This document shows, piece by piece, positions 2,707 through 63,425 of a stretch of 64,000 nucleotides of DNA. The DNA is taken from contig CDRNVI010000048.1 of assembly GCA_977017575.1 (NCBI GenBank), forward strand, positions 62,001-126,000, in the 5' to 3' direction. The position numbers and the translations under genes are program-made. The notes beneath the pieces are model-generated. The model did not search any database, was not told where the DNA came from, and saw only the letters and a program-made list of their open reading frames with translations. The stretch's first letter is position 1. Each line of letters opens with the position of its first letter. This stretch comes from Paramoeba atlantica. Taxonomy: Eukaryota > Protista > Discosea.

Positions 2707-3480
2707 TCATCGCCGGTATCCCGAAAGTGAAGTGCTGGTACTAAAATAAGTACCGCATAATTCGGCTATCCAAGGTCCCACACTTGTGATGATTTCGTTT
2801 ACAGGCAAAGAACCATGATCCGAAGTCTTGTTACCTATCTCGATCCACTTTGTGGTGCGAGACGGATCCTGAAAAAAGTTTGTTACCTCTGAGTTCACAT
2901 GAGCAGAAGTGTCTTTCCTGTCCCTGACAAATAACATGGGGAGATTTTTCACGGCCGGATTTTGCAGTACTGAAACGAACAACGCGTGTTGTGTGTGAAA
3001 TTTCGAGATAATACAAAACGGATAATTAACTGCTATGAACCCATGAATGTGTTTAAGGGGAAAACTATTCAGCACGCTACCGGCAAGAAAAGCACCATAT
3101 TCTATCCCGCCGAGCACGATACCCTGTGGATATAGCTCTACCACTTCTTTAAGAACTTCAATCACATCCAAACGGTCTACATCAGCTGTGTCACGTGAAC
3201 CTCCGCTGGGACTCACACCTCTGTAATTAAAACGAAACGAAATCAAGTTTGCAAAGGAAGCTGTGTCACACAACGTGCTTAGGCCAGCGTGCTCAAAGCT
3301 ATAGTTGTGCTGGGGGTGTGAGCCGCACCACACCACAACAGGCCGCGTGATACCACGACTAATGCCAAAGGGTCTCTGCACCAAACCGTGTATCTCGATA
3401 CCCGACTGTGTACAAAACCGATACGTAGATTTAGAGGCTATGGTTAAACGCTCCAAAAGTCTCACTTGGTGAGAAAGCAT
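2707..3480 (-). CDS. Alpha/beta-hydrolase-fold protein, nucleophile apparently lost
   Basis: FRFNYRGVSPSGG and IVLGGIEYGAFLA (GxSxG position reads GIEYG). Confidence 0.7.
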   Translation of the reverse strand: MLSHQVRLLERLTIASKSTYRFCTQSGIEIHGLVQRPFGISRGITRPVVVWCGSHPQHNYSFEHAGLSTLCDTASFANLISFRFNYRGVSPSGGSRDTADVDRLDVIEVLKEVVELYPQGIVLGGIEYGAFLAGSVLNSFPLKHIHGFIAVNYPFCIISKFHTQHALFVSVLQNPAVKNLPMLFVRDRKDTSAHVNSEVTNFFQDPSRTTKWIEIGNKTSDHGSLPVNEIITSVGPWIAELCGTYFSTSTSLSGYRR

Positions 3481-3848
3481 GAGCGCCCGATACTAAGACT
3501 TCGTGAGGATGCTAGGAGAACGTCATGCGGGTAGACAAACCACATATTTGCAAGAAATCAAATCAGGAATCTGCGAAAAAATATCAGAACATTGGCAGTA
3601 ATTCTTCAGCGAAGTATAATACATATTTGCATAATGAGAAAGTGCAAACAAATGTTGAAAACTAACTATTGATAAGCCACGCTCATCCATAAGTAAGTGA
3701 TACAAAAAGCGGAGAATTACTTTTTTATGCTTCTTACACGAGGTTCAAAATCTCGATGATTGGCTTCTCAAAACTGCATGATTCTTAGAAATCATACACC
3801 GAAAAGAAGCCGTTCAGAATAGGAAGTTTCATCCATTTTCTGGTCAAA

Positions 3849-4277
3849 TCATATAACTGAGTTTCGAACTTCTGTTTTGATGCGACCATAATTCGCATTC
3901 TTTAAACTGATTGATTGAATGCATGTCCCCCTTAAAATGATGAAACCAACTTGTTTAAAATAAACGCCATCTTTCGGAATGTCGTTGTCCGCGCTAATAT
4001 GGTCTTTATCAGTTGACTGAGAATAACTCAATTGCCTGCGCTTTACTATTGCGTGCATTTTATCCTGATAATTCGGGTCTGAAGTGACATCCTCTTCAGT
4101 GTCGAGCAGGGCGACGTTACCATTACGATCGAAAGATACAAGTTTACCTGCGAATTTCCTGTTGTCGTCGGTATTAACGTTAATGCGATAACCAACTAAA
4201 GGCAGCAGCCCACCGCGAAAATCTGGGACGACGTTTTGCTTGCCAAACACATGACGTTTGTCTGAAGGGGCGTGCAT
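3849..4277 (-). CDS. Sm/LSm-fold protein, SmB-like
   Basis: Sm1 LVGYRINVNTDDNRKFAGKLVSFDRNGNVALLDTEE; Sm2 VGFIILRGTCIQSISL. Confidence 0.8.
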   Translation of the reverse strand: MHAPSDKRHVFGKQNVVPDFRGGLLPLVGYRINVNTDDNRKFAGKLVSFDRNGNVALLDTEEDVTSDPNYQDKMHAIVKRRQLSYSQSTDKDHISADNDIPKDGVYFKQVGFIILRGTCIQSISLKNANYGRIKTEVRNSVI

Positions 4278-4432
4278 GTATAATTCGTACTGAAAGTCAA
4301 GATTTCCTCTACATTTAAATCACAAGGCATTGATTCTTCTATGATTATTCTCTTTTTAGCTACGTACCTATTTTTGTTCGGCTGAAAGAAATAATGTACA
4401 AAACAAAAAACAATGCTAACCTATTTTCGGCA

Positions 4433-4478
4433 AAACACTTGTGATTAAAACACACTTGTGATTAAACACTTGTCATTA
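4433..4478. repeat. Short tandem repeat, ~3x ACACTTGTGATTAA
   Basis: aaacacttgtgattaaaacacacttgtgattaaacacttgtcatta. Confidence 0.8.
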
Positions 4479-4690
4479 TTTTTCAATGGTTGCGCTCATT
4501 TTTAACTCCTTTCTGACAAAGCAAACCTGTCCTTGCATAAATCATGTGGTGCATCTTCCTGGCGAGAATGACGCACTTTTTGCTCTTTAGTGAATTTTAG
4601 TAGATGAGAAACTCATCTGCTTCTTTGACTGGTTCTCATTAGGCAGGCAATCATTCCACAACTGTACTGTTTCTTCGCCAGGATACATTA

Positions 4691-4990
4691 CCGTATACCC
4701 CACCAGTAAGAGAATGGGTTTTGGGTCGAAATGGCTAAATCTCCCTTACTGGGGGGGGTATGCTTTTTTGACCAGTTTCCTCTTTTCTCCCAACTTTTTT
4801 GACTATTTTTTTCTATTTTTTCTTCTGAAAACGTGTTAAAACGCTTATTTGGGTTACCCCCGAGGCCCCCAACATGCAGGCACCCACCCCCTACCCCCTA
4901 TACGCCCCCTGTGGGGCGCCCGAGCCAAATCTCTCTTACTGGGGGTCAGCCCCAAAAGAGCCAAATCCCTCTTTTGGGGGGGGTATACGG
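4691..4990. mobile_element. 300-bp MITE, CCGTATACCCC TIRs, TA TSD (pogo/Tc1-mariner-like)
   Basis: TA|CCGTATACCCC ... GGGGTATACGG|TA; internal repeats AAATCTC(C/T)CTTACTGGGGG. Confidence 0.85.
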
Positions 4991-5139
4991 TATGCATCTT
5001 TATCCAAGACCTTGATGTTTCACATCAATCACTGAAAGAACTATCGGACATCGGAGGCGCCCTTCGCCTTGATTTCCTATCAGGTTATCCGTCGCCTTCT
5101 GAGTCGGAGAAAGTGCATTATGCATCTGCGCTTGGTCTA

Positions 5140-5600
5140 TGGGGGTCCAGAGGGGGGGCGCAGGGGGGGTCCAGGGGGCGTACGTCGCAATTTTTTTCGA
5201 ATTTTTTGCCTTTCAACATCGAGCGCAGTGAAGTGGTAGAGTATGCCGCGGCAATAATTTTCCACCCCCCACCTGGGGGTGACCCCCCCCTGTTATGCGT
5301 AGGAGGGGTCCGACAAGTTTGAAAAATCCGAAATTTTTGGAGTGACCCAAAAAATAAATATTGACCAAAAAAGAAGTACTAAGAAGTAAAAATATTATTT
5401 TTCCAAAATCGACTCCTAACACGTATTTTAAGAGACTCAAAATGGAATAATTTCGAAGATAATAATTTCACATTTTGGTATGAATATGACCACAAAAAAT
5501 CAACAAAAAAAAATGAAAGTTTAAGAGTTTTGGACCTCAGCTAGAATTCTACGACGTTTTTTTCGGCAGATTAGCCTCCTGTCCCTACTGGTAAGGCATC
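5140..5600. repeat. Dispersed repeat family A, copy 1 (G/C-run-rich non-autonomous element)
   Basis: Reverse complement aligns by eye to 38383-38726, e.g. AAGAGTTTTGGACCTCAGCTAGAATTCTACGACG and GGTAAGGCATC. Confidence 0.85.
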
Positions 5601-6299
5601 AAAAGGCGGAAGAATTATTGAACGAAATGAGCCGAAATCCCACGTAGGAAGCACAGTGTGAATTACTTCGCACTAAAGGGCCTAGCGTCATAAGATCAAT
5701 CACACATGCTCGTAATGTTCGAGCTGTGACATGCCCCAAACTTGGTTCTACCCGGTGGATTTCTGATAAATTTGAAAGTATAAAGTATAGCTTGACTGGC
5801 CCGGCTCGGGTGTCAGTCACGCACACTTCCTGTACAATGGAAGGTCGGACGTTAACCTCATTCCCTTGCAAGAGAATTAAGAGGGCTGAAACTAGAGATT
5901 TACGATCCCGGCCGATCCCATCGGTCCTGGTTGAATTTACGTGGAAGAAAAGTCTTGGTGAAAACGCGAGTTCTAGAAATTCGGCGAAAGAAATAGCGAC
6001 CATTTTTTTACAGAAACTCATTCAATTGTTAAAAATCAAAAACAATATTCATATGAAGGTAGGAGAAACTAAACAAACATTTACTATTAAATAGAAAGCC
6101 CCTATATATTTTTGTTTCTCCTCTTTCGCTCTTTGGACTTGAGTGCAAATCTCTGCTGCGCGTATCCTTTGTCGTCTGATTCTTTTGCTTTAGCTGAGCG
6201 TTCTTTAAATTAAAGTACGTCCTCTGTGATTTTGACCCCTGCTCAGAACATTTTCCTATCCGACTAACGCCTTTTGAGGGGTTGAAGAAGTTCATCCAA

Positions 6300-6819
6300 T
6301 TGGTAAAACCTCTGACGCACGCGAAGCAGGTTGTCACGAGAACACTGCGAAGCGTTGGATTCAGCGATACGAGGAGACAGGAGACGTGGATAATAACCCG
6401 AGCTATAACCCTCATTGATGAAGGTACGCGAGATTTGCCTTATGGAATTCCGTCATGGTCGAACCTCGTGTCAACCCTTCAGTCCGAAAGGTTTTATTGT
6501 TCCCGGCGCTCTATCACGCGCACTTTAAAGCGTGAAGGCATCATTTTGCACACTGTCCCCCGTCATCCAGCTCTTACGGCTTCCCACAAGCAGAAACGAA
6601 TAGAGCTGTGCCGCGAGCTGTCGGAGTGGACCCCTCATGATTTTGAGCCCTCACCATTTTGATGAAAATAGTGTCACAATGCTAGCTTGGCCCCCTCAGC
6701 CTCCTGATCTCAACCCCATCGGAAATATTTGGGGACAAATTGAATCACACAAAAATACTAAATGTACCAAAAATAGGGGGGAATTGCGTGATGCAATACA
6801 TTCAGGGTTCAATTGCTGA
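6300..6819 (+). pseudogene. Tc1/IS630-family transposase remnant, catalytic core deleted
   Basis: HTH AREAGCHENTAKRWIQRYEETG; linker HPALTASHKQKRIELCRELSEWT; C-terminal WPPQPPDLNPIGNIW; frameshifts. Confidence 0.85.
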
Positions 6820-6956
6820 AAGTACTTTGTTGAAGGACTTTTCCCCCTCTAAAAGCCCGTACTGTTCTGTTTAACAAGTAAAGTACTACTTAACAAGCAA
6901 AGTTGATACGAGCAAAGTTGTAGATACGATCATTGTCGTTTTAGTATCGTTCTCCA

Positions 6957-7066
6957 TTTTTTTAGTCTCTTCGTTAAACGCGGCAGTAGTTTTCAAGGGG
7001 AAGCGCGCAGCAGTGGTGTCATCTAAGTTGAAAACAACCACTACATTTAATGAAGAGCCTAATAAA
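6957..7066. repeat. ~110-bp foldback (two ~40-bp imperfect inverted arms)
   Basis: TTTAGTCTCTTCGTTAAACGCGGCAGTAGTTTTCAA / TTGAAAACAACCACTACATTTAATGAAGAGCCTAA; solo arm at 38242. Confidence 0.75.
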
Positions 7067-7555
7067 GGATAAAAAGTGATAGAAAAAAGGTCAAAGTAGT
7101 AAAAAATACAGTGTCTTAAGAAGCTACGCAAGCGCCGATCCCGACCGATCCCACCCGATAAGTGACAGGGTCCTCCAGGTTTCAGCCCTCTAAGTGTACC
7201 TGTATTTACACACACAAGTCCGACCTGTTAGCCTCGGACCAGCAGGATTATAGGATACCTTACACATATAGGAAGTTTCTTTCCGAGCAATTATCCACTG
7301 TGGTTAAGAGCGAGCTCGAAAGTTTACGAGTACCACAATCCGTTCACGAGCTTACTAACATACTCGAAAATAATTCCATTACAGAACTTATTCAATGTGC
7401 TAAAGAGTTTCTTCAAGAGTGTGCTCTGTTGCGCGTTGCTCAGGAAAAATTTTCTGCTATGCATGATCGATCCATGGCCGCGTTAGTGTATCCTACGTTG
7501 CAACAACTCATAGAGTCCTCCGAGACTGCTCCTCTACACATGATTGATGCTATTA

Positions 7556-8449
7556 GTGGGTTGAAACCTGTGAAAGGCAAAACCTGGCAAAACCATAGTG
7601 GCAGTTAATAATTATTATAATGGAAATTATTAATCATTTCTATTATAAAAAAATCCCAATTATCAATAATTATTAATAATTTTTCAATGGTACCTAAAAT
7701 ACTCAATTTTGCGGCCGTCTTCGGGAAAAAATGAATCTGCGGGAACAAATTTCTCTTTCTTGCGGACTGGCACAATGTTCGGCAGGTGGCCTAAGGAAGG
7801 GGGTGGTGAAAGGCGGGTGTGGTGAAAGACCGGGGCGTGTTCTTAATTAATGTTTCCACGGTAAAATAATTATTATTTTTTAAACATAATTATTATTAAA
7901 GACTAAAATTATTAATACTTCTGCCACTATGGGCAAAACCCGCTTATGCTTCATAGATGTGGCGAAGCAAAGTGCTTTGTCAAAAATAGTGAAGAATATA
8001 CTTGGTCTCCATGCGCTGCAAAATATTTTTTGCGCTACAAAAGGTGAAACTTTTGAAAAAAATATTTTTCGAAATAAACCCCCAGAACGGGTAGCCGAGG
8101 TCTTGGCGCACATTTTCCACCTCCGTACTCGAGGACGACCCCCCCCCCTCGTATCAACAGGACGGGGCCGCCAAGCTCGGTATTTTCTGAAAAGAACATT
8201 GAAAAAAAAGTCAACTTGGCGAAAAACATGGCTTAAAAAATAGTTTTTCAAAATCGTTTCATCTATTGTATTTCGAGAGTTTGGGACCTATACTAGCTTT
8301 CTATGCCGTTGTTTTCACAAGATACCCCTTCTTGAAGCCGTGACACGCCTCCCGAAATGATGTCCCAAAAAATTGGTGTCCTGGCAAAACCAGGCGAAAC
8401 TGGGCAAAACCTGGCAAAACTCGGCAAAACTTAACAGGTTTCAACCCTC
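7556..8449. mobile_element. TWA-TSD element 2 (PIF/Harbinger-like, non-autonomous)
   Basis: TTA|GTGGGTTGAAACCTGT ... ACAGGTTTCAACCCTC|TTA (15/16 TIR); GGCAAAAC subterminal repeats at both ends; excision restores the flanking frame. Confidence 0.85.
8100..8310. repeat. Diverged copy of repeat family A nested in TWA element 2
   Basis: TTTTCCACC..GACCCCCCCC..AGGACGGGGCCGCCAAG and TTTTCAAAATCG..AGAGTTTGGGACCT match family A motifs. Confidence 0.55.
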
Positions 8450-9002
8450 TTAATGTGCACGTGAAGCGAGTTTCTAACAAGAACGAACTGCTGATTTGGG
8501 GTTCACTAATGTGGTTTTCGCCGGAGTGGATTGTGCTTTTCGCATGCCCGCGTAACAAAACATCGATTTCTGTTGAGCGCGCCGTTCACGCAGTCGAACT
8601 GGTTCTCCTATTTTTGAAACTACGGAAACCGATTGGTCTAACTACGTGACGTGCGAGGATTACGACTGGACTTCAGAGCTAAGCGACGTGGACTGGTGGA
8701 AGCAAGTTGGCAAAAAACGTTTTCCTTCCATATAGGGATGGGCACGCAAATGTGGTGGGGTCAAAATTTCTATAGCTTGGCCAATTTGTGTGATGCACCC
8801 GCATATTACCTTTAACAACAACCGTACGTTACTTCTCTAACAATGTCACAGCCTGTGATTCCATTCTTTCTGTATTTGCGAGGAAATATAATTCTCGGCA
8901 AGTGAGCATAGGAATCGATGTTGTGGCGACTCAGATGTTTCTGCGAGGTAACGAAAAATCATTAGCTCATCATGCAAGCAGTGCTAAATTAAAGAATAAA
9001 TA

Positions 9003-9302
9003 CTATCCCCCCTATTTAATAGGGCTACGTGCGACCCCCTTTAATAGGGCCATTTTGTCTGGAAGACCAAAATAGATCAAATTCTTTTTCTCGAATCCGC
9101 TGCGAAGGGGCGATTTTTTTTTCGTGCCTACCCCAACAACAAAAAGTGTGTCAAAAGCGAGCAGCAGGACCTTGTTTAACAACGATAAAAAAAGGCGCCG
9201 CGAAACGGCGCCGATTTTTTTCTTTCACATTATTTTCCATGTACCTCCCTTTAAAAGGGCATTTTTCCCAAAATCGGAGTCCTATTAAATAGGGGGGGAT
9301 AG
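9003..9302. mobile_element. 300-bp MITE with 21/22-bp TIRs and TA TSD
   Basis: TA|CTATCCCCCCTATTTAATAGG ... CCTATTAAATAGGGGGGGATAG|TA. Confidence 0.85.
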
Positions 9303-9402
9303 TAGTAACTAATGAACAATCCCGAACGAAGTATCTCTACTCTGAAAAATAGCGATCATAAAGACAGAGGCTCCTAATGTGAGCTTGCGTTCTCCATTTT
9401 TT

Positions 9403-9465
9403 ATAGATGATATAGATTTTATAGGTGATATAGATTTTATAGATGATATAGATTTTATAGATGAT
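9403..9465. repeat. 18-bp tandem repeat x3.5
   Basis: ATAGATGATATAGATTTT units at 9403, 9421, 9439, partial at 9457. Confidence 0.9.
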
Positions 9466-10335
9466 TGTAGATGATATTCGGTTAATCTACTAGCCGATTA
9501 GTACTAAATTAGTAATTACTCGTTGGTTGCATAGCTCAATGGGCGATCTTATCCGCATTACCCAATCCTAAGCCTGGGGAAGGTCCAAATCAGGACCGGG
9601 GGAGGAGGGTGGAGAAATTCCTTTTAAAACAAAAAGAGATATTTCCTCGAGGTTTTGATGACTGTTTAGAGTGCATACATGTTTTAAGCGTGGGTGGCTA
9701 TTAAGCTAGGATAGAATATATAAACCACTGTCCAGTTTATGACCATTGCCTATGACCAGTTACTGTGTCGGGGGGGGGCACAGTAAGTTGTCCTGGGGGT
9801 ATTTCGTGTGTCCCCCCCTCAGGAGGAGATCATTTTTAGATTTTAGATATTTGTTCTTTGAGCTTTTCAACACCTTTTATAAATTTTTCACGGAATTTTT
9901 AAAAGCGAGTCTGATAGCTACTCCACCGATAGCACAGAAGAACACGATACTGACGATGAGCGCGAAATTTCGGATCAAGAACTGGAGGTAGTTGATTTTT
10001 CGACTCTTTTCGATGAAAAAAGAGAAGACGGCTATACTTCATCCGAAGAAGACGAAAACAATGAGATGCGCAATCTAATCTTCTCGAGCAACACAACGTA
10101 CGTAAACGTCTTTTAAATAGAGGCGACCGCACAGCTGGAATCCCTGTTTCTGGGAAGAAAATTTATGCCTCTATATCTATCAAAGACAAGCGTTTAGCTG
10201 TCCGACTTTTCCGACACTATGAAGGACAAGCAGAGTGGTTCTCAAAGCTACAAAAAAAACTTTTCATGGCTACCAAAGGAAGGGTTTTTCTGAGATCACG
10301 TGATCAGCTACAAAAATGGAGGAAGCTTGTAGTCG

Positions 10336-11492
10336 ATGCCGCACGCGGAATGGGAAACAGAAAAAAGGTTGCGCACTCGTCCTCGTTCAACTGATCCTGT
10401 TGGAACTGAATTGCTTGAATGGTACACGAACTTACGCTCGCAAAATATGAGAGTATCGGTGGCGGCAGCAAAGGCGAGAGCTCGTGTTATAAACGGAACT
10501 CCAGTTTCGAATAAGTGGTTTTACCGTTGGAAACGACAGCATGATATTGTGCTAAGGTCTGTTCAGCGCACTACTACTCGCACCATACAAGAAATTACCG
10601 CATTGCTCAACTCTTTTCATCAATTCCTTTACAATATTCTTTTAGCAAGCATTGTTAGTATAATAATCAACCTGGATGAAATTCCTTTTTCCCTAAGTGG
10701 AAGTATGAATTCTCGGTCCACTTTAAGCGATCGCGGATCAAGAAATGTTATTTGAGAGGACCCCAATTGGGATCGCCGATGCTGCTCTTATTCCTTCTAA
10801 TTATTCCTGCAATAATTGGCATAATAAAAAGAGAATGTGGTTTCTCTCCATTCAAATTGCGTTGCGCGGTACTGCTAAGGCGCAAATGTAAAAAGTCGTG
10901 GGTTCTTTCTAACCCTTTTGGTTGGCTAATTGAAGAAAGTTCATCCGGTGTTATCACAAGTTCAATGATGGTGGGTAGCATAATTCCTTTTATTCGTGGT
11001 CAAGTAACTCCTTTGCTTAGTGGAACCGAAGTATGCTTGACTATCATGGATGGTGCCACTGGGCATACCACTTCTCCTGTGAAGCGTTGATTTTCAGAAT
11101 TTTCGAAACTGGCTATCATTCCAAGTGGCATGACTCAATTTGTACAAGCGATTGATACGGACTACGCAGCGAAGTTTCTGCATAATTACACAATTCAACA
11201 TTACCAGCCTTGGGTTTTGACTGGCGTCCGGAAGATAAAGTCCAAAAGTGCTGCTGAACTCATGGTACGATGGTTGGGAAAGGCGCATGAAAAAACTTTG
11301 AATGAATTTAACATAGTCTCATGCTTCGAAAAACTCGGCTACAGCAATGGTACCAACATTGCAATATCGCGCCTTCCCTATACGTTTACACTGAGCGTGC
11401 CGGACGTAATGATTGTTTTGTTTAAGGTATCAGACAAGGATGTTCTATTTCGTTGGAATCTTAGCAAGCAATGGGTTCCTCCTGATTTCTGA
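10336..11492 (+). pseudogene. pogo-like (CENP-B HTH + DDE_1) transposase pseudogene
   Basis: ELLEWYTNLRSQN..SNKWFYRWKRQH; INLDEIP; IMDGATGH; IPSGMTQFVQAID; internal stops and one frameshift. Confidence 0.9.
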
Positions 11493-12085
11493 GAAAAAAC
11501 AAGAATAAACAGGGCACGCATTCAATGTTACTGGGCAATACGTACTACTGCATTTAATTACCTCTAAATTAAGCAATTCAAAGTTACTACTACTACTACT
11601 ACTACAAATAAGTGGGGGGCCGCAGTAATTGTAATCTAAACAAGCTCATTGTTCTTTGTTTTAGCCCGTCCTGCGCGCACAAAATTCTCTTGATGAGATC
11701 TGCAAAGTGCAACAAAGTGGGGGGTCACTTTTCGTGATACATGTATTTCCAGTAGTATATTTATTGAGTATGTTAGCCTAACTTACTACTTAACCTTAGG
11801 TGTGTTTTGCTGGCAAGTGAAATGTACACCAGAAACAGCACCAGAGACAATATCGCCTTACATAATTCGATTTAGAAAACGCCTTCGGTTTTCTCCCACA
11901 TAACGACTTCTCTTGTTTTGGGGGGGGGGCGACCCCCCCCCCGATCATCAATTATATCAGAGCATTGCATACTGGAGCGTCGGTATAACTCAAGTGCTCC
12001 AATGGACTTGCCTCACAAGTTGTGACCAAAGTGCATCGAGTATGACATCTTGCGAACATGTCTACCCAACTACGGAGTAGTCTGA

Positions 12086-21123: not shown

Positions 21124-21210
21124 CGATATGAAAATAAAGTAAATGAAATTTGAGTAGTTCATAATATATAAATTTTATAAATTTACATGCATCATTGAAC
21201 AACTTGATCA

Positions 21211-21253
21211 TTTTGACCCAAAACCCACTCTCTTACTGGGGGGGGGTATACGG
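21211..21253 (-). mobile_element. Solo terminus of the 4691 MITE family
   Basis: TTTTGACCCAAAACCCACTCTCTTACTGGGGGGGGGTATACGG|TA is the reverse complement of the 4691 left end. Confidence 0.85.
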
Positions 21254-21367
21254 TAGTAGATTTAGACGCTTATGGATATACCAAGACTGCGCTTCGGCAG
21301 CCCGAAATAAAAACGCAAAGGGGTGGAACAACTTTCTGTTCCGGTAGTCAATGCCAACTATTCATGT

Positions 21368-37936: not shown

Positions 37937-38230
37937 TTACGCCACCGGAATACTATCGCATTGGTCCACTGTATCAATAAGTGTATTGGTGAAATCGTAG
38001 AGTCTTGAACTGTTCAACGGATTACTCGCCATAACGTATGAACCTCTGAGCCTCAAATTTTCTGCAAGGTTAAATACCAGTAATGAATCTGGCAGCGAAT
38101 AAAAAGAAACCGTCCGGAAAATTCATTGTTCTTCAAAGAAATGGATCTTGGCAACGGTAAACTCTTAAAGCACGGAATCCCACTAAATTTGTTGTGCTAC
38201 AAGGAATTAGTGTTGGTGTCACTCATGCTG
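37937..38230 (-). pseudogene. Frameshifted LRR gene fragment, same family as 56058
   Basis: Hand translation HNKFSGIPCFKSLPLPRSISLKNNEFSG, then shifted LPDSLLVFNLAENLRLRGS..*. Confidence 0.65.
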
Positions 38231-38241
38231 TGCACTTCGCG

Positions 38242-38280
38242 TTGAAAACTACCACCGCGTTTAACGAAGAGCCTAAAAAA
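38242..38280 (+). repeat. Solo arm of the 6957 foldback
   Basis: TTGAAAACTACCACCGCGTTTAACGAAGAGCCTAAAAAA. Confidence 0.8.
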
Positions 38281-38382
38281 GAAAAATCTCCAATACATCA
38301 TGAATAATCTACTTTTTTGGGGGAAGAAGCTCGATTTTTCTGCAAAAATTGCGAAATTTCACACCGAATTTGTGCCGTTTTA

Positions 38383-38726
38383 GATGCCTTACCAATAGGG
38401 GCAGGAGTCGAATCTGTCGAAAAAAACGTCGTAGAATGGTAGCTGAGGTGCAAAACTCTTAAAACACGTTTTAGGACACGATTTTGGAAAAATAATATTT
38501 TTACTTTTTTTTGGGTCAAAATTTATTTTTTTTTGGTCGCCCCAAAATTTTCGGAAATTTTGTCGGACCCCTCCTGCGCGTACCAGGGGGGGTACCCACA
38601 GTGGGGGGTGGAAAATATCGCCGCGGCCTACTCTACCACTTCCCTGCGCTCGATTTTGAAAAGCAAAAAATTCGAAAAAACATTCTTGACGTATGCCCCC
38701 CCCATGGACCCCCCCACTAGACCCCC
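38383..38726. repeat. Repeat family A, copy 2 (inverted relative to 5140)
   Basis: Reverse-complement match to 5140-5600. Confidence 0.85.
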
Positions 38727-61549: not shown

Positions 61550-61957
61550 ATCTATAAATTCGTAAAAACCTTATTGTATTGTTCTATTTTGTTTTATAAG
61601 GAGTAGCGCTGTCAACATAATTTAAAATACAGTTACATTGTACATTTCGCTTGATTACTGAAAATCTGTTTTACCTCTATTATAACTTTTCGACTTTACG
61701 CCACTCGGGTTGAACCTTCATAACGTAGAAGCACCTATAGTGTACATCCTTGTAAACTTTATATCCCTCTCGAAGATTCCACTTTTGCCTGAAAATTTTG
61801 ATGAACCTTCTTCGGATGCGAAAGTCATCGAGCGCTTCGTGTTCTTGGAGCTTGCGAGAGTAATTAGTTTATGGTGGGTAAGATATAAATTTATTTACGT
61901 TATTGACAGAAATCATAAATTATGAACGCGGGCGGGTGCTGACGTTCTCATTCGTTA

Positions 61958-63302
61958 TAGGGTTGAAACCTGTGGTTTCAATGGAGGATAACATCATTGA
62001 GATGTGCGCACAGTGGATAACTACGCGCATTCGCCAACTCTCTGATCTGCTTTGGAATGCAGAATGCTTTCGGTGGAAATTTTGCAAGCGAGAATTGTAC
62101 CGCGGCACGGTGGTTATGTTAGATGCTGAGTAGAAGTTTGTAAACGAGTGGAAATCTAGGCCAGATTGTTTGTGTACATTTTTTAAGGATGATGCTAGAG
62201 ACAAAGAAGCAACAAAAGATTACCGCGACCGTATAAAGTGAGAACTTTACATTTCTGGGATCAGTAATGTAGGAAAGTGCCCAGCACATGCCAAGAAATC
62301 GGATGTAACATATACAAAGCTAACGAAAAGTGAAATTCTGAGGAAAAATGAAAAGTTGAAACTCATACACGATGAAGAACAAACTTCCAAGAGAAAGTTT
62401 CGCAAGTATTCCAATCAGATGGACAAGAAAATGTTTAATCAGAACGAATAATTTGGTGAAAGTGAAGCATTATTGCGCCAAAAAAATATTTTTCTCCAAT
62501 TTTCAAATATTGGTTTGAAACAAGTATGTTTTCTTTTAGAGTGTCAGATTATTAAAAATACAAACTTTTTTCACGGTTTATCACTATGAACTGCGCACAA
62601 TAACACAATTAATTAAGTTGTCTGCTGGAAGCCGAACCGTAACGCGCACTGATGGGTGGCGAGCGAGTCGCTCGCTGGGAAAAGACTTGCGGCATGAGAC
62701 AGTTAATCGTCGACGATCTTTGGTGCACACCAACACTGTTGAACGCATGAGTGAGATACTCAAGAAGGCAGTACGATCCCGTGGGAATGGGACCCTTGGG
62801 TGCTTTGATGAAGAAAGAAAAGATTGACCAAAGTTCAGCGGAGACGTCGTCAATGGTCTGAAGATCGGAAACAGCGAGGGAGATCCTTTAAAACAGCTGT
62901 GCGAAGATCTCTAATTAATGTGAAGACTCATCTTTTTAGAAGCGAAATCAAAAGAAATAAGTAGTAGCGGCCCATAAACGTAAAAAGATATCTGCATTTA
63001 TTTTTTTCAAAAAAGGCGCAATAATGCTTCACTTTGACCAAAAATTTATTCGTTCGTTATTATAATGTTATCAGAATCCGTGATACTATCCTCAGCGGTA
63101 AAAGAGTGGAGGAAGGCGGGTGTCCGCTAATTATTAGATAGGGTGATTTTTACTGAGAAAAAAGAATATCAGAATAATTTCAGTAAGGGCACGACGGAGG
63201 TCAAGTATTCTTCACTATTTCTGACTAAGTACTTTTCTTCACTACGTCAGAGTGGACTTCGCGGGTTTTGCCAGGTTTTGCCTTTCGTAGGTTTCAACCC
63301 TC
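61958..63302. mobile_element. TWA-TSD element 3 (PIF/Harbinger-like)
   Basis: TTA|TAGGGTTGAAACCT ... AGGTTTCAACCCTC|TTA; right end is the reverse complement of element 2's left end; left end lacks subterminal repeats. Confidence 0.6.
62540..62914 (+). pseudogene. Merlin (IS1595/ISXO2-like) transposase remnant
   Basis: GS..TDGWRA..LG..HETVN..HTNTVE..LKK; after one TGA the frame continues to GDPLKQLCEDL*. Confidence 0.75.
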
Positions 63303-63425
63303 TTAGTCAACTGAGGCAAGTCTAAAATAATTCGTAGTGGACACATCGTCCAAAGTTTATAATGATTAGAGGTCAAAGTTCTCATGGCCTCGAACAGGGG
63401 TCCGAATAACTTTATATAGTTTATA

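Follow-up and report, generated by a model that had tools for sequence, protein, structure and literature searches.

The question raised by the locus described here is what kind of gene an interrupted coding frame once was and which elements have broken it. The frame lies in a stretch of 64,000 nucleotides (nt) deposited for Paramoeba atlantica (assembly GCA_977017575.1, contig CDRNVI010000048.1, positions 62,001 to 126,000 of the forward strand), which we call the window and which was analysed at its full length. An earlier note on this DNA, made from the sequence alone, had proposed a nested transposon fossil in which two excisions rebuild the frame of a hAT transposase. Our analysis indicates that the region from 5604 to about 9413 very probably represents about 45% of a very divergent hAT-superfamily DNA transposon, namely the 3' part of a copy that is dead and was later hit by inserts (Table 1). 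The locus is real, had been read correctly for the most part and is an ordinary nested transposon fossil, and its layered history of at least five layers stands as proposed. A present-day function of anything at this locus is unlikely.

The reconstruction of the frame carries much of this reading. When element 1 is removed with one TAA kept and element 2 is removed with one TTA kept, the pieces 5648-5880, 7194-7555 and 8453-8649 (233 + 362 + 197 = 792 nt) join into a single frame of 263 codons plus a stop, with no internal stop and with K and N as the residues at junctions 1 and 2, as had been claimed. The other two frames of the join contain 14 and 21 stops, and in the raw region (4400-12000) no open stretch exceeds 160 codons. 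Because 20,000 shuffles of the 792-nt join yielded not one open frame, the 263-codon frame is not due to chance. A duplication of 3 bp fits both sites, because with 2 or 4 bp the restored frame would be lost. The proposed element boundaries and the 3-bp size of the target-site duplications (TSDs) are likewise borne out by the terminal inverted repeats (TIRs), by the TAA/TAA and TTA/TTA pairs and by the gap-free alignment of junction 2 to paralogous copies.

These copies came from a phmmer search with the middle piece of the fossil, which among 1.8 billion representatives returned only the window's own protein (P0001) and two others, P0002 (60% identity, E 1.7e-23) and P0003 (54% identity). The contigs of all three belong to one assembly of the European Nucleotide Archive (ENA), ERZ24900291, the only one among those representatives in which the host family was found. 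The contig of P0001 (L003) is 99.9% identical to window positions 6301-8607 and has both insertions. Because the window's own open reading frame (ORF), P0001, lies on the same assembly, the two loci L001 and L002 are older paralogues from the same organism. At junction 2, the window's HMIDAI-N-VHVKRV corresponds to VVESVNKHVKRV and HFLESIHWHVRRV in the paralogues, where P0002 and P0003 run through uninterrupted, and with one TTA kept the DNA aligns without gaps to both L001 and L002. Uninterrupted copies of the kind anticipated in the earlier note do exist at this junction, and L001 and L002 represent the paralogous empty site for element 2. L001 is likewise colinear and uninterrupted across the site of the second of two miniature inverted-repeat transposable elements (MITEs) found here, MITE 2.

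Junction 1 is different in its evidence. L001 and L002 pass directly from ESIK to FLSEQ, without element 1 and without the 177 nt that surround it (5786-5880 + 7194-7272), an in-frame layer or indel that the earlier reading had missed. This segment is single-copy, has no TIRs, is in phase with the frame and is free of stops. Because it is missing from the paralogues, the support for junction 1 comes from the TIRs, the TSD and the phase continuity of two independently homologous frames. On either side of it, homology is clear. It begins at about 5604, a few nt from the end of the dispersed repeat family A, and the first piece aligns to L002 with a Smith-Waterman score of 109 (z 21) and is matched to L001 and L002 by tblastn and blastn as well. 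The window copy and L001 have diverged under purifying selection, with a proportion of non-synonymous differences (pN) of 0.18-0.30 versus a proportion of synonymous differences (pS) of 0.72-0.84; they are therefore copies of once-active lineages. All the hAT-like copies are broken, and they occur at multiple loci.

Table 1. Positions of the fossil, its inserts and its nearest gene (window coordinates unless a locus is named).
Feature	Position	Strand	Remarks
LSm-domain ORF	3849-4277	minus	
MITE 1	4691-4990		300 bp; TA TSD 4689-4690 + 4991-4992
Family A dispersed repeat	5143-5603		borders the recognisable hAT fragment on its 5' side
hAT-like fossil, first demonstrable piece	5604-5785	+	TRWISDKFESIK motif; one in-frame stop at 5645-5647
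177-nt segment, left half	5786-5880	+	in frame, stop-free
Element 1	5881-7190		1310-bp non-autonomous TIR element; TSD TAA 5878-5880 + 7191-7193
Tc1-like transposase remnant, deleted, within element 1	6282-6816	+	Pfam HTH_Tnp_Tc3_2 E 3.4e-7; DDE_3 tail E 1.3e-3
177-nt segment, right half	7194-7272	+	missing from both paralogues
hAT-like fossil, helical middle	7273-7555	+	tblastn of L001 E 7e-31; single-copy depth
Element 2	7556-8449		894-bp non-autonomous TIR element; TSD TTA 7553-7555 + 8450-8452
hAT-like fossil, end of the 263-codon frame (WFSPEWIV...SISVER)	8453-8649	+	
Broken C-terminal region, probably hAT dimerisation and catalytic	8574-9005	+	L001 homology E 1e-16 and 1.6e-18
Asp codon at the expected third catalytic position	8857-8859; L001 ~6676-6678; L002 ~1520		
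MITE 2	9006-9299		294 bp; TIR TCCCCCCTATTTAATAGG; TA TSD 9004-9005 + 9300-9301
hAT-like fossil, 3' untranslated part	9302-9413	+	homology to L001
Element 3 (same TIR group as elements 1 and 2)	61958-63302		TSD TTA 61955-61957 + 63303-63305; GAGGGTTGAAACCTG ends

A third excision restores the end of the reading frame. MITE 2 occupies the last codon of the hAT ORF, and when it is removed with one TA kept, ...KNKYY becomes ...KNKY followed by TAG (codons read by hand), a stop that falls where L001 has its own. Past the site, DNA homology to L001 runs for a further 112 nt, to about 9413, and blastn aligns the MITE 2-excised window to L001 with 62% identity over 278 nt spanning the site. Because L001 homology resumes beyond it, MITE 2 lies inside its host element and not at its end; the second MITE that had been placed at the 3' end thus exists, with its TA duplication, but interrupts the last codon instead of lying beyond the element. 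A TA duplication combined with TIRs, as expected of Stowaway-like MITEs mobilised by Tc1/mariner transposases, is found for both MITE 1 and MITE 2, which also match this group in their high copy number and show nothing unusual. Tc1-like and pogo-like remnants are present near the MITEs, and no partner transposase was identified for them.

The hAT call follows from the C-terminal remnant of the window copy and from transitivity through its paralogues. In every copy, frameshifts break up the C-terminal region. When the single frameshift in the L001 C-terminus (at a C-run) is read with X, the only Pfam match is Dimer_Tnp_hAT (PF05699), with E 7e-5 and 23.0 bits, compared with a curated cut-off of 21.4 bits, and it covers profile positions 22-83 of 84. 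The window C-terminus, with X at its three breaks, also has Dimer_Tnp_hAT as its sole Pfam match, below the cut-off (E 0.063, 13.5 bits). In this part of the window DVDWWKQVGKKRFPSI is read in the -1 frame and VTACDSILS...FLRGNE in a third frame. The frame changes twice, and at ~8733-8843 there are about 75 additional nt and a stop; the dimerisation domain that was said to follow the rebuilt frame is therefore present as a remnant homologous to L001, but it is wrecked. Among the language-model look-alikes of the paralogues' N-terminal ORFs, nearly all are RNase H families of the hAT type (DUF4371, FAM200-ZBED5_RNase-like, ZBED1_RNase-like, DUF659 and AC9). By eye, the blocks FFGLxxDGG, MADGAPVNN, PCFGHLFHN and TRWxS can be matched to hAT transposases, and the C-terminal WW...(F)P...L...S(E/D)xxxS...R..(L/I)...FL..N region of hAT proteins (Ac, hobo and Hermes, and those of the Buster/ZBED5 type) is also found in the paralogue that passes Dimer_Tnp_hAT.

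In L001, the element at 3037-7697 has complete ends, with TIRs C(G/A)TAGTCT(G/A)(T/A)CTAGTATTT... of at least 27 nt and matching arms to about 55 nt; it is itself host to two nested TIR elements, at 3091-3921 and at 4876-5816, and has an internal deletion relative to L002. Its TSD, in the only copy with both ends, is 6 bp (ACTATG), whereas hAT elements usually have 8 bp; hAT subgroups with 5-bp or 6-bp TSDs (hAT5 and hAT6 in Repbase naming) are known. A second departure concerns the third catalytic residue, usually a Glu. At the position where it is expected (S-E-R-x-F-S), all three copies have Asp (ACDSILS in the window, ACDSVLS in L001 and TSDWVLP in L002), and from its spacing to the conserved R-I, F-L and terminal N, set against the alignment to Hermes, this Asp would be expected to occupy the position of the catalytic Glu. 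Also unlike known hAT elements, the host family is recognised by no Pfam RNase H model, and the TIRs of L001 are long (27-55 nt). Together, the L001 Dimer_Tnp_hAT match, the language-model neighbours and the TIRs and TSD of L001 support, if only just, the assignment of the host to a divergent hAT-superfamily element.

Several results weigh against this account as a whole and have to be set beside it. Pfam searches with all the uninterrupted pieces of the window, L001, L002 and L004/P0005 (351 aa) recovered no hAT or RNase H model, the composite of L002 gave no Dimer_Tnp_hAT match, and phmmer against PDB sequences, with the pieces and the L001 composite, returned no relevant chain. The language-model scores were 0.82-0.90, which makes the look-alikes leads only. 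Junction 1 has no paralogous empty site, as the paralogues lack the flanking 177 nt too, and none of the short-read contigs listed bridges the left end of element 1. TIRs of the L001 type were sought across the window and none was found, nor could a TIR, a TSD or the true 3' end of the window copy itself be identified. As for the inserts, neither the window nor the fetched loci contained an autonomous partner, and in the fetched loci the GAGGGYTGAAAC ends themselves were not found, so that the PIF/Harbinger label discussed below depends on TSD and TIR style alone. Further searches were equally unproductive: L002:2-643 had no Pfam hAT RNase H match, and its AlphaFold2 model, made without an alignment, was unusable (predicted local distance difference test score (pLDDT) 34); an atlas search with the helical middle (L001:5959-6573) gave only BTB/BACK-like noise under the recognition threshold; and a homologous-protein search with the WW-containing ORF of L001 yielded zero candidates. 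The earlier note had named the lack of a hAT or RNase H-like hit for the rebuilt protein as the outcome that would speak against a hAT host, and formally this is what the 263 residues alone give, with no match to any such hidden Markov model; the hAT host is rescued only by the C-terminal remnant, through L001.

In view of these results, it may be asked whether the host ORF belonged to some other gene or transposase, with the WW...FS...N pattern arising by coincidence. The uninterrupted pieces without Pfam or PDB matches, a Pfam match that needs X read-through and reaches only 23 bits, the 6-bp TSD of L001 and the Asp at the expected third catalytic position can all be cited in its favour. However, the L001 match exceeds the curated cut-off, is to a single family and spans 62 of the 84 profile positions; the same family is the sole match of the window copy; the two language-model searches point almost exclusively to hAT-type RNase H families; and L001 has TIRs and a TSD, while the copies are all broken and lie at several loci, as is expected of a transposon and not of a host gene. 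We consider a non-hAT origin improbable. An assembly artefact, in which repeats were mis-joined into an apparently nested structure, is a still weaker candidate and can practically be discounted. It gains something from the repeat-rich surroundings and from the lack of a listed short-read contig across the left end of element 1, but both ends of element 2 are spanned, with zero differences, by short-read contigs (7166-7800 and 8423-9029) from runs X1 and X2, although both runs possibly come from the same sample as the window assembly; the ENA contig of the locus has both insertions at 99.9% identity; and mis-joins are not expected to yield exact TSDs together with a restored frame. Empty-site joints (5880>7194 and 7555>8453) did not appear among the joints listed, where contigs show presence and not absence. 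Read depth, taken at 90% likeness (single copy ~59-120 in run X1), was single-copy for the hAT pieces and the 177-nt segment, a few hundred for the bodies of elements 1 and 2, and in the thousands for MITE 1, family A, 6905-7071 and the family-A core of element 2.

Two further alternatives concern parts of the structure. The 177 nt around element 1 could be another nested insertion, and then the oldest layer, since both paralogues lack exactly these nt between ESIK and FLSEQ and AAG stands on both sides. Against this, the segment has no TIRs, and the window, the loci and the read contigs all show it as single-copy; its length is a multiple of three and it is stop-free in phase, for which the estimated chance in a random insert is ~0.02; and this agrees with a coding segment specific to one lineage, or with a deletion from the other. 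An insertion is thus rather unlikely here, and we favour a coding indel between subfamilies, although the direction of the change cannot be read from three copies that are about equally distant from one another. The other alternative holds that elements 1, 2 and 3 were moved by a different transposase that makes 3-bp duplications, one not of the PIF/Harbinger type. It would accord with the lack of a DDE_Tnp_4 or Myb-like ORF in all three, with the Tc1-like remnant in element 1 and with a stretch of element 3 that resembles IS1595/Merlin by eye without a Pfam match. The flanks argue the other way, as all three TSDs are TAA or TTA, at odds with the TA of Tc1 or the 8-9 bp of Merlin, and the restored frame would not survive a duplication of 2 bp. 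We regard this alternative as a serious one, if the less likely of the two origins.

The three elements in question form a group. Elements 1, 2 and 3 have GAGGGYTGAAACCTG ends and TWA duplications (TAA, TTA and TTA) in common. The TIRs of element 1 (GAGGGCTGAAAC) are perfect over 12-13 nt; those of element 2, GTGGGTTGAAACCTG and GAGGGTTGAAACCTG, follow the pattern G(T/A)GGGTTGAAACCTG, with GGCAAAAC subterminal repeats inside them and a core (~7990-8350) that is a diverged copy of family A; and the right end of element 3 is 95% identical over 37 nt to the left end of element 2. With one mismatch allowed, the TIR motif GRGGGYTGAAAC occurs at 7 sites in the window versus 1.2 expected, and six of the seven are the ends of these elements. 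The TWA target duplication is a hallmark of PIF/Harbinger transposons, and it flanks every one of the three. Non-autonomous members of that superfamily, the Tourist-like MITEs, likewise have G-rich TIR starts and short subterminal repeats and code for no protein themselves. In contrast to typical MITEs, which are smaller, the window elements measure 0.9-1.3 kb, and they differ from Tourist-like MITEs in carrying captured or nested transposon pieces (the Tc1-like remnant and family A). No recognisable transposase was found in elements 1-3. It is reasonably likely, judging from the TSD alone, that they owe their mobility to a PIF/Harbinger-type (PHIS) transposase that is encoded elsewhere and acted in trans.

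Element 1 is multi-copy, at ~5-10 times single-copy depth. Within it, 6905-7071 (also present at 38217-38280) is the most repeated segment of the region, with a summed depth of ~8000 versus ~60-120 for single copy, and elsewhere in the genome its copies are linked to sequences of family A and of MITEs. In element 3, the stretch that resembles the tail of IS1595/Merlin-type transposases by eye (HETVN...HTNTVE...LKK) lies within the ORF at 62618-62827. We also considered whether the inserts could be introns or introners and rejected this, as their ends (GAGGG...CCCTC) are not splice-like and their host is a dead transposon.

On its 5' side, the fossil is incomplete. The N-terminal pieces of the paralogues (RNase H region) gave no significant match in the window by tblastn or phmmer. 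The best local alignment there pairs 5014-5136 with residues 162-199 of P0005 (IYHPKHKSFNGSEMAQSLIEVLRSCLSESRLLKLRF region); it is colinear but weak (41 aa, score 41, z 2.8), was equalled in 16 of 1000 shuffles and lies just below the 99th percentile (42) of a null drawn from the window. Once MITE 1 is removed, at most ~560 nt separate the LSm gene from family A, and because of this the missing half of the hAT element cannot fit upstream. The window copy is 5'-truncated or internally deleted; if the 5014-5136 match is real, ~500 nt have been lost at the family A site. The 300-bp MITE and family A, which were thought to interrupt the 5' part of the transposase, both exist, but a hAT origin cannot be demonstrated for 4635-5600; family A borders the fragment instead of cleanly interrupting it, and a hAT nature of the sequence around MITE 1 is unproven. 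Family A is a high-copy repeat of ~460 bp with G-run-rich ends and a summed depth of ~15-60 times single copy across the repeat. Besides the diverged copy in element 2, the window holds another at 38370-38715 (minus strand), and read joints show that the copy at 5143-5603 has 86-111 nt extra (~5435-5520) compared with other genomic copies. MITE 1 reaches a depth of ~50-100 times single copy and has a partial copy at 21209-21255.

One feature of the C-terminal part is shared by the whole family. In all three paralogues, the frame changes by -1 within the same 29-32-nt spacer, from ...SISVER to IF(E/D)xT... (window 8580-8620, with the T-run at 8611-8615; L001 6470-6515; L002 1360-1400). In the window and L001, two of the three copies, the change coincides with a T5 run. 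Across the spacer, the alignment of the three DNAs is free of relative frame-breaking indels, and purifying selection acted on either side of it. No copy has a significant RNA structure after the T-run that might stimulate frameshifting. Bacterial IS1 and IS3 elements make a short OrfA-like and a long OrfAB-like product, and the same scheme can be proposed for this hAT-like lineage, which might normally express its C-terminal part through a -1 change at the T-run, by ribosomal frameshifting or transcriptional slippage. If so, the part expressed in this way would comprise the dimerisation region and the third catalytic residue. We consider this doubtful; three parallel losses of one base in a T6 hotspot are the plainer alternative.

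From these results, the following history can be proposed. A hAT-like element would have inserted first, from a lineage that had already split, under purifying selection, from the L001 and L002 lineages. Elements 1 and 2 and MITE 2 would then have inserted into it, in whatever order, each insertion contributing presumably only the element and its target duplication; because nothing else was added, excision brings back the reading frame at both TWA sites and the stop codon at the MITE 2 site. Elements 1 and 2 may already have carried their Tc1-like piece and family-A piece, respectively, when they arrived here. The C-terminus would have decayed through frameshifts, a stop and ~75 extra nt, and the 5' part may have been lost or replaced beside family A.

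The pile of transposons fills a gap at 4.4-12 kb inside a directional ORF cluster that spans 2707-61033, with the LSm gene on one side and a NIF gene on the other. Nearly all the long ORFs of the cluster are intronless and on the minus strand, as is apparent for almost all of those at 12-61 kb, and their domains are of the housekeeping kind (NIF phosphatase, LsmAD, DUF2039, MFS, Alg9-like, Noc2, 2-oxoacid dehydrogenase E2, GTPase, cyclophilin, actin-like and pyruvate kinase). Scans for Rfam families and tRNAs detected zero features in the window. With this one-directional, intron-free gene layout the window resembles kinetoplastid-like euglenozoans, a kinship suggested by gene organisation alone. 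The same gap contains more transposon debris, namely a pogo/Tc5-like ORF with a helix-turn-helix domain at 10336-10755 (HTH_Tnp_Tc5, E 6e-7) and, ~1 kb downstream, 11625-11737, which is 70-93% identical to the end region of a TIR element nested in L001 that carries a Tc1-like DDE tail. Just past the last stretch homologous to L001, at ~9420-9500, the translation shows a short tandem repeat of IDDIDF-like units.

In summary, three in-silico excisions, compared with paralogous empty sites, fix the boundaries and TSD sizes of three families present here, a group of TWA-type elements and two TA-type MITEs, and they yield a relative order of insertion that is useful for a repeat library of this genome. 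A paper of 2021 described Merlin, in Bodo saltans and Perkinsela, as the first DNA transposon in kinetoplastids (PMC8101967), and Merlin is the only one in the literature that we found for this group. The elements of the window are DNA transposons as well but differ from Merlin, with hAT-like, TWA-type, TA-type, Tc1-like and pogo-like sequences together in one intergenic gap. The added value is modest: known superfamilies are extended, with no change of concept, by what is supported as a very divergent hAT lineage and by a TWA-type element group in a poorly sampled lineage of protists.

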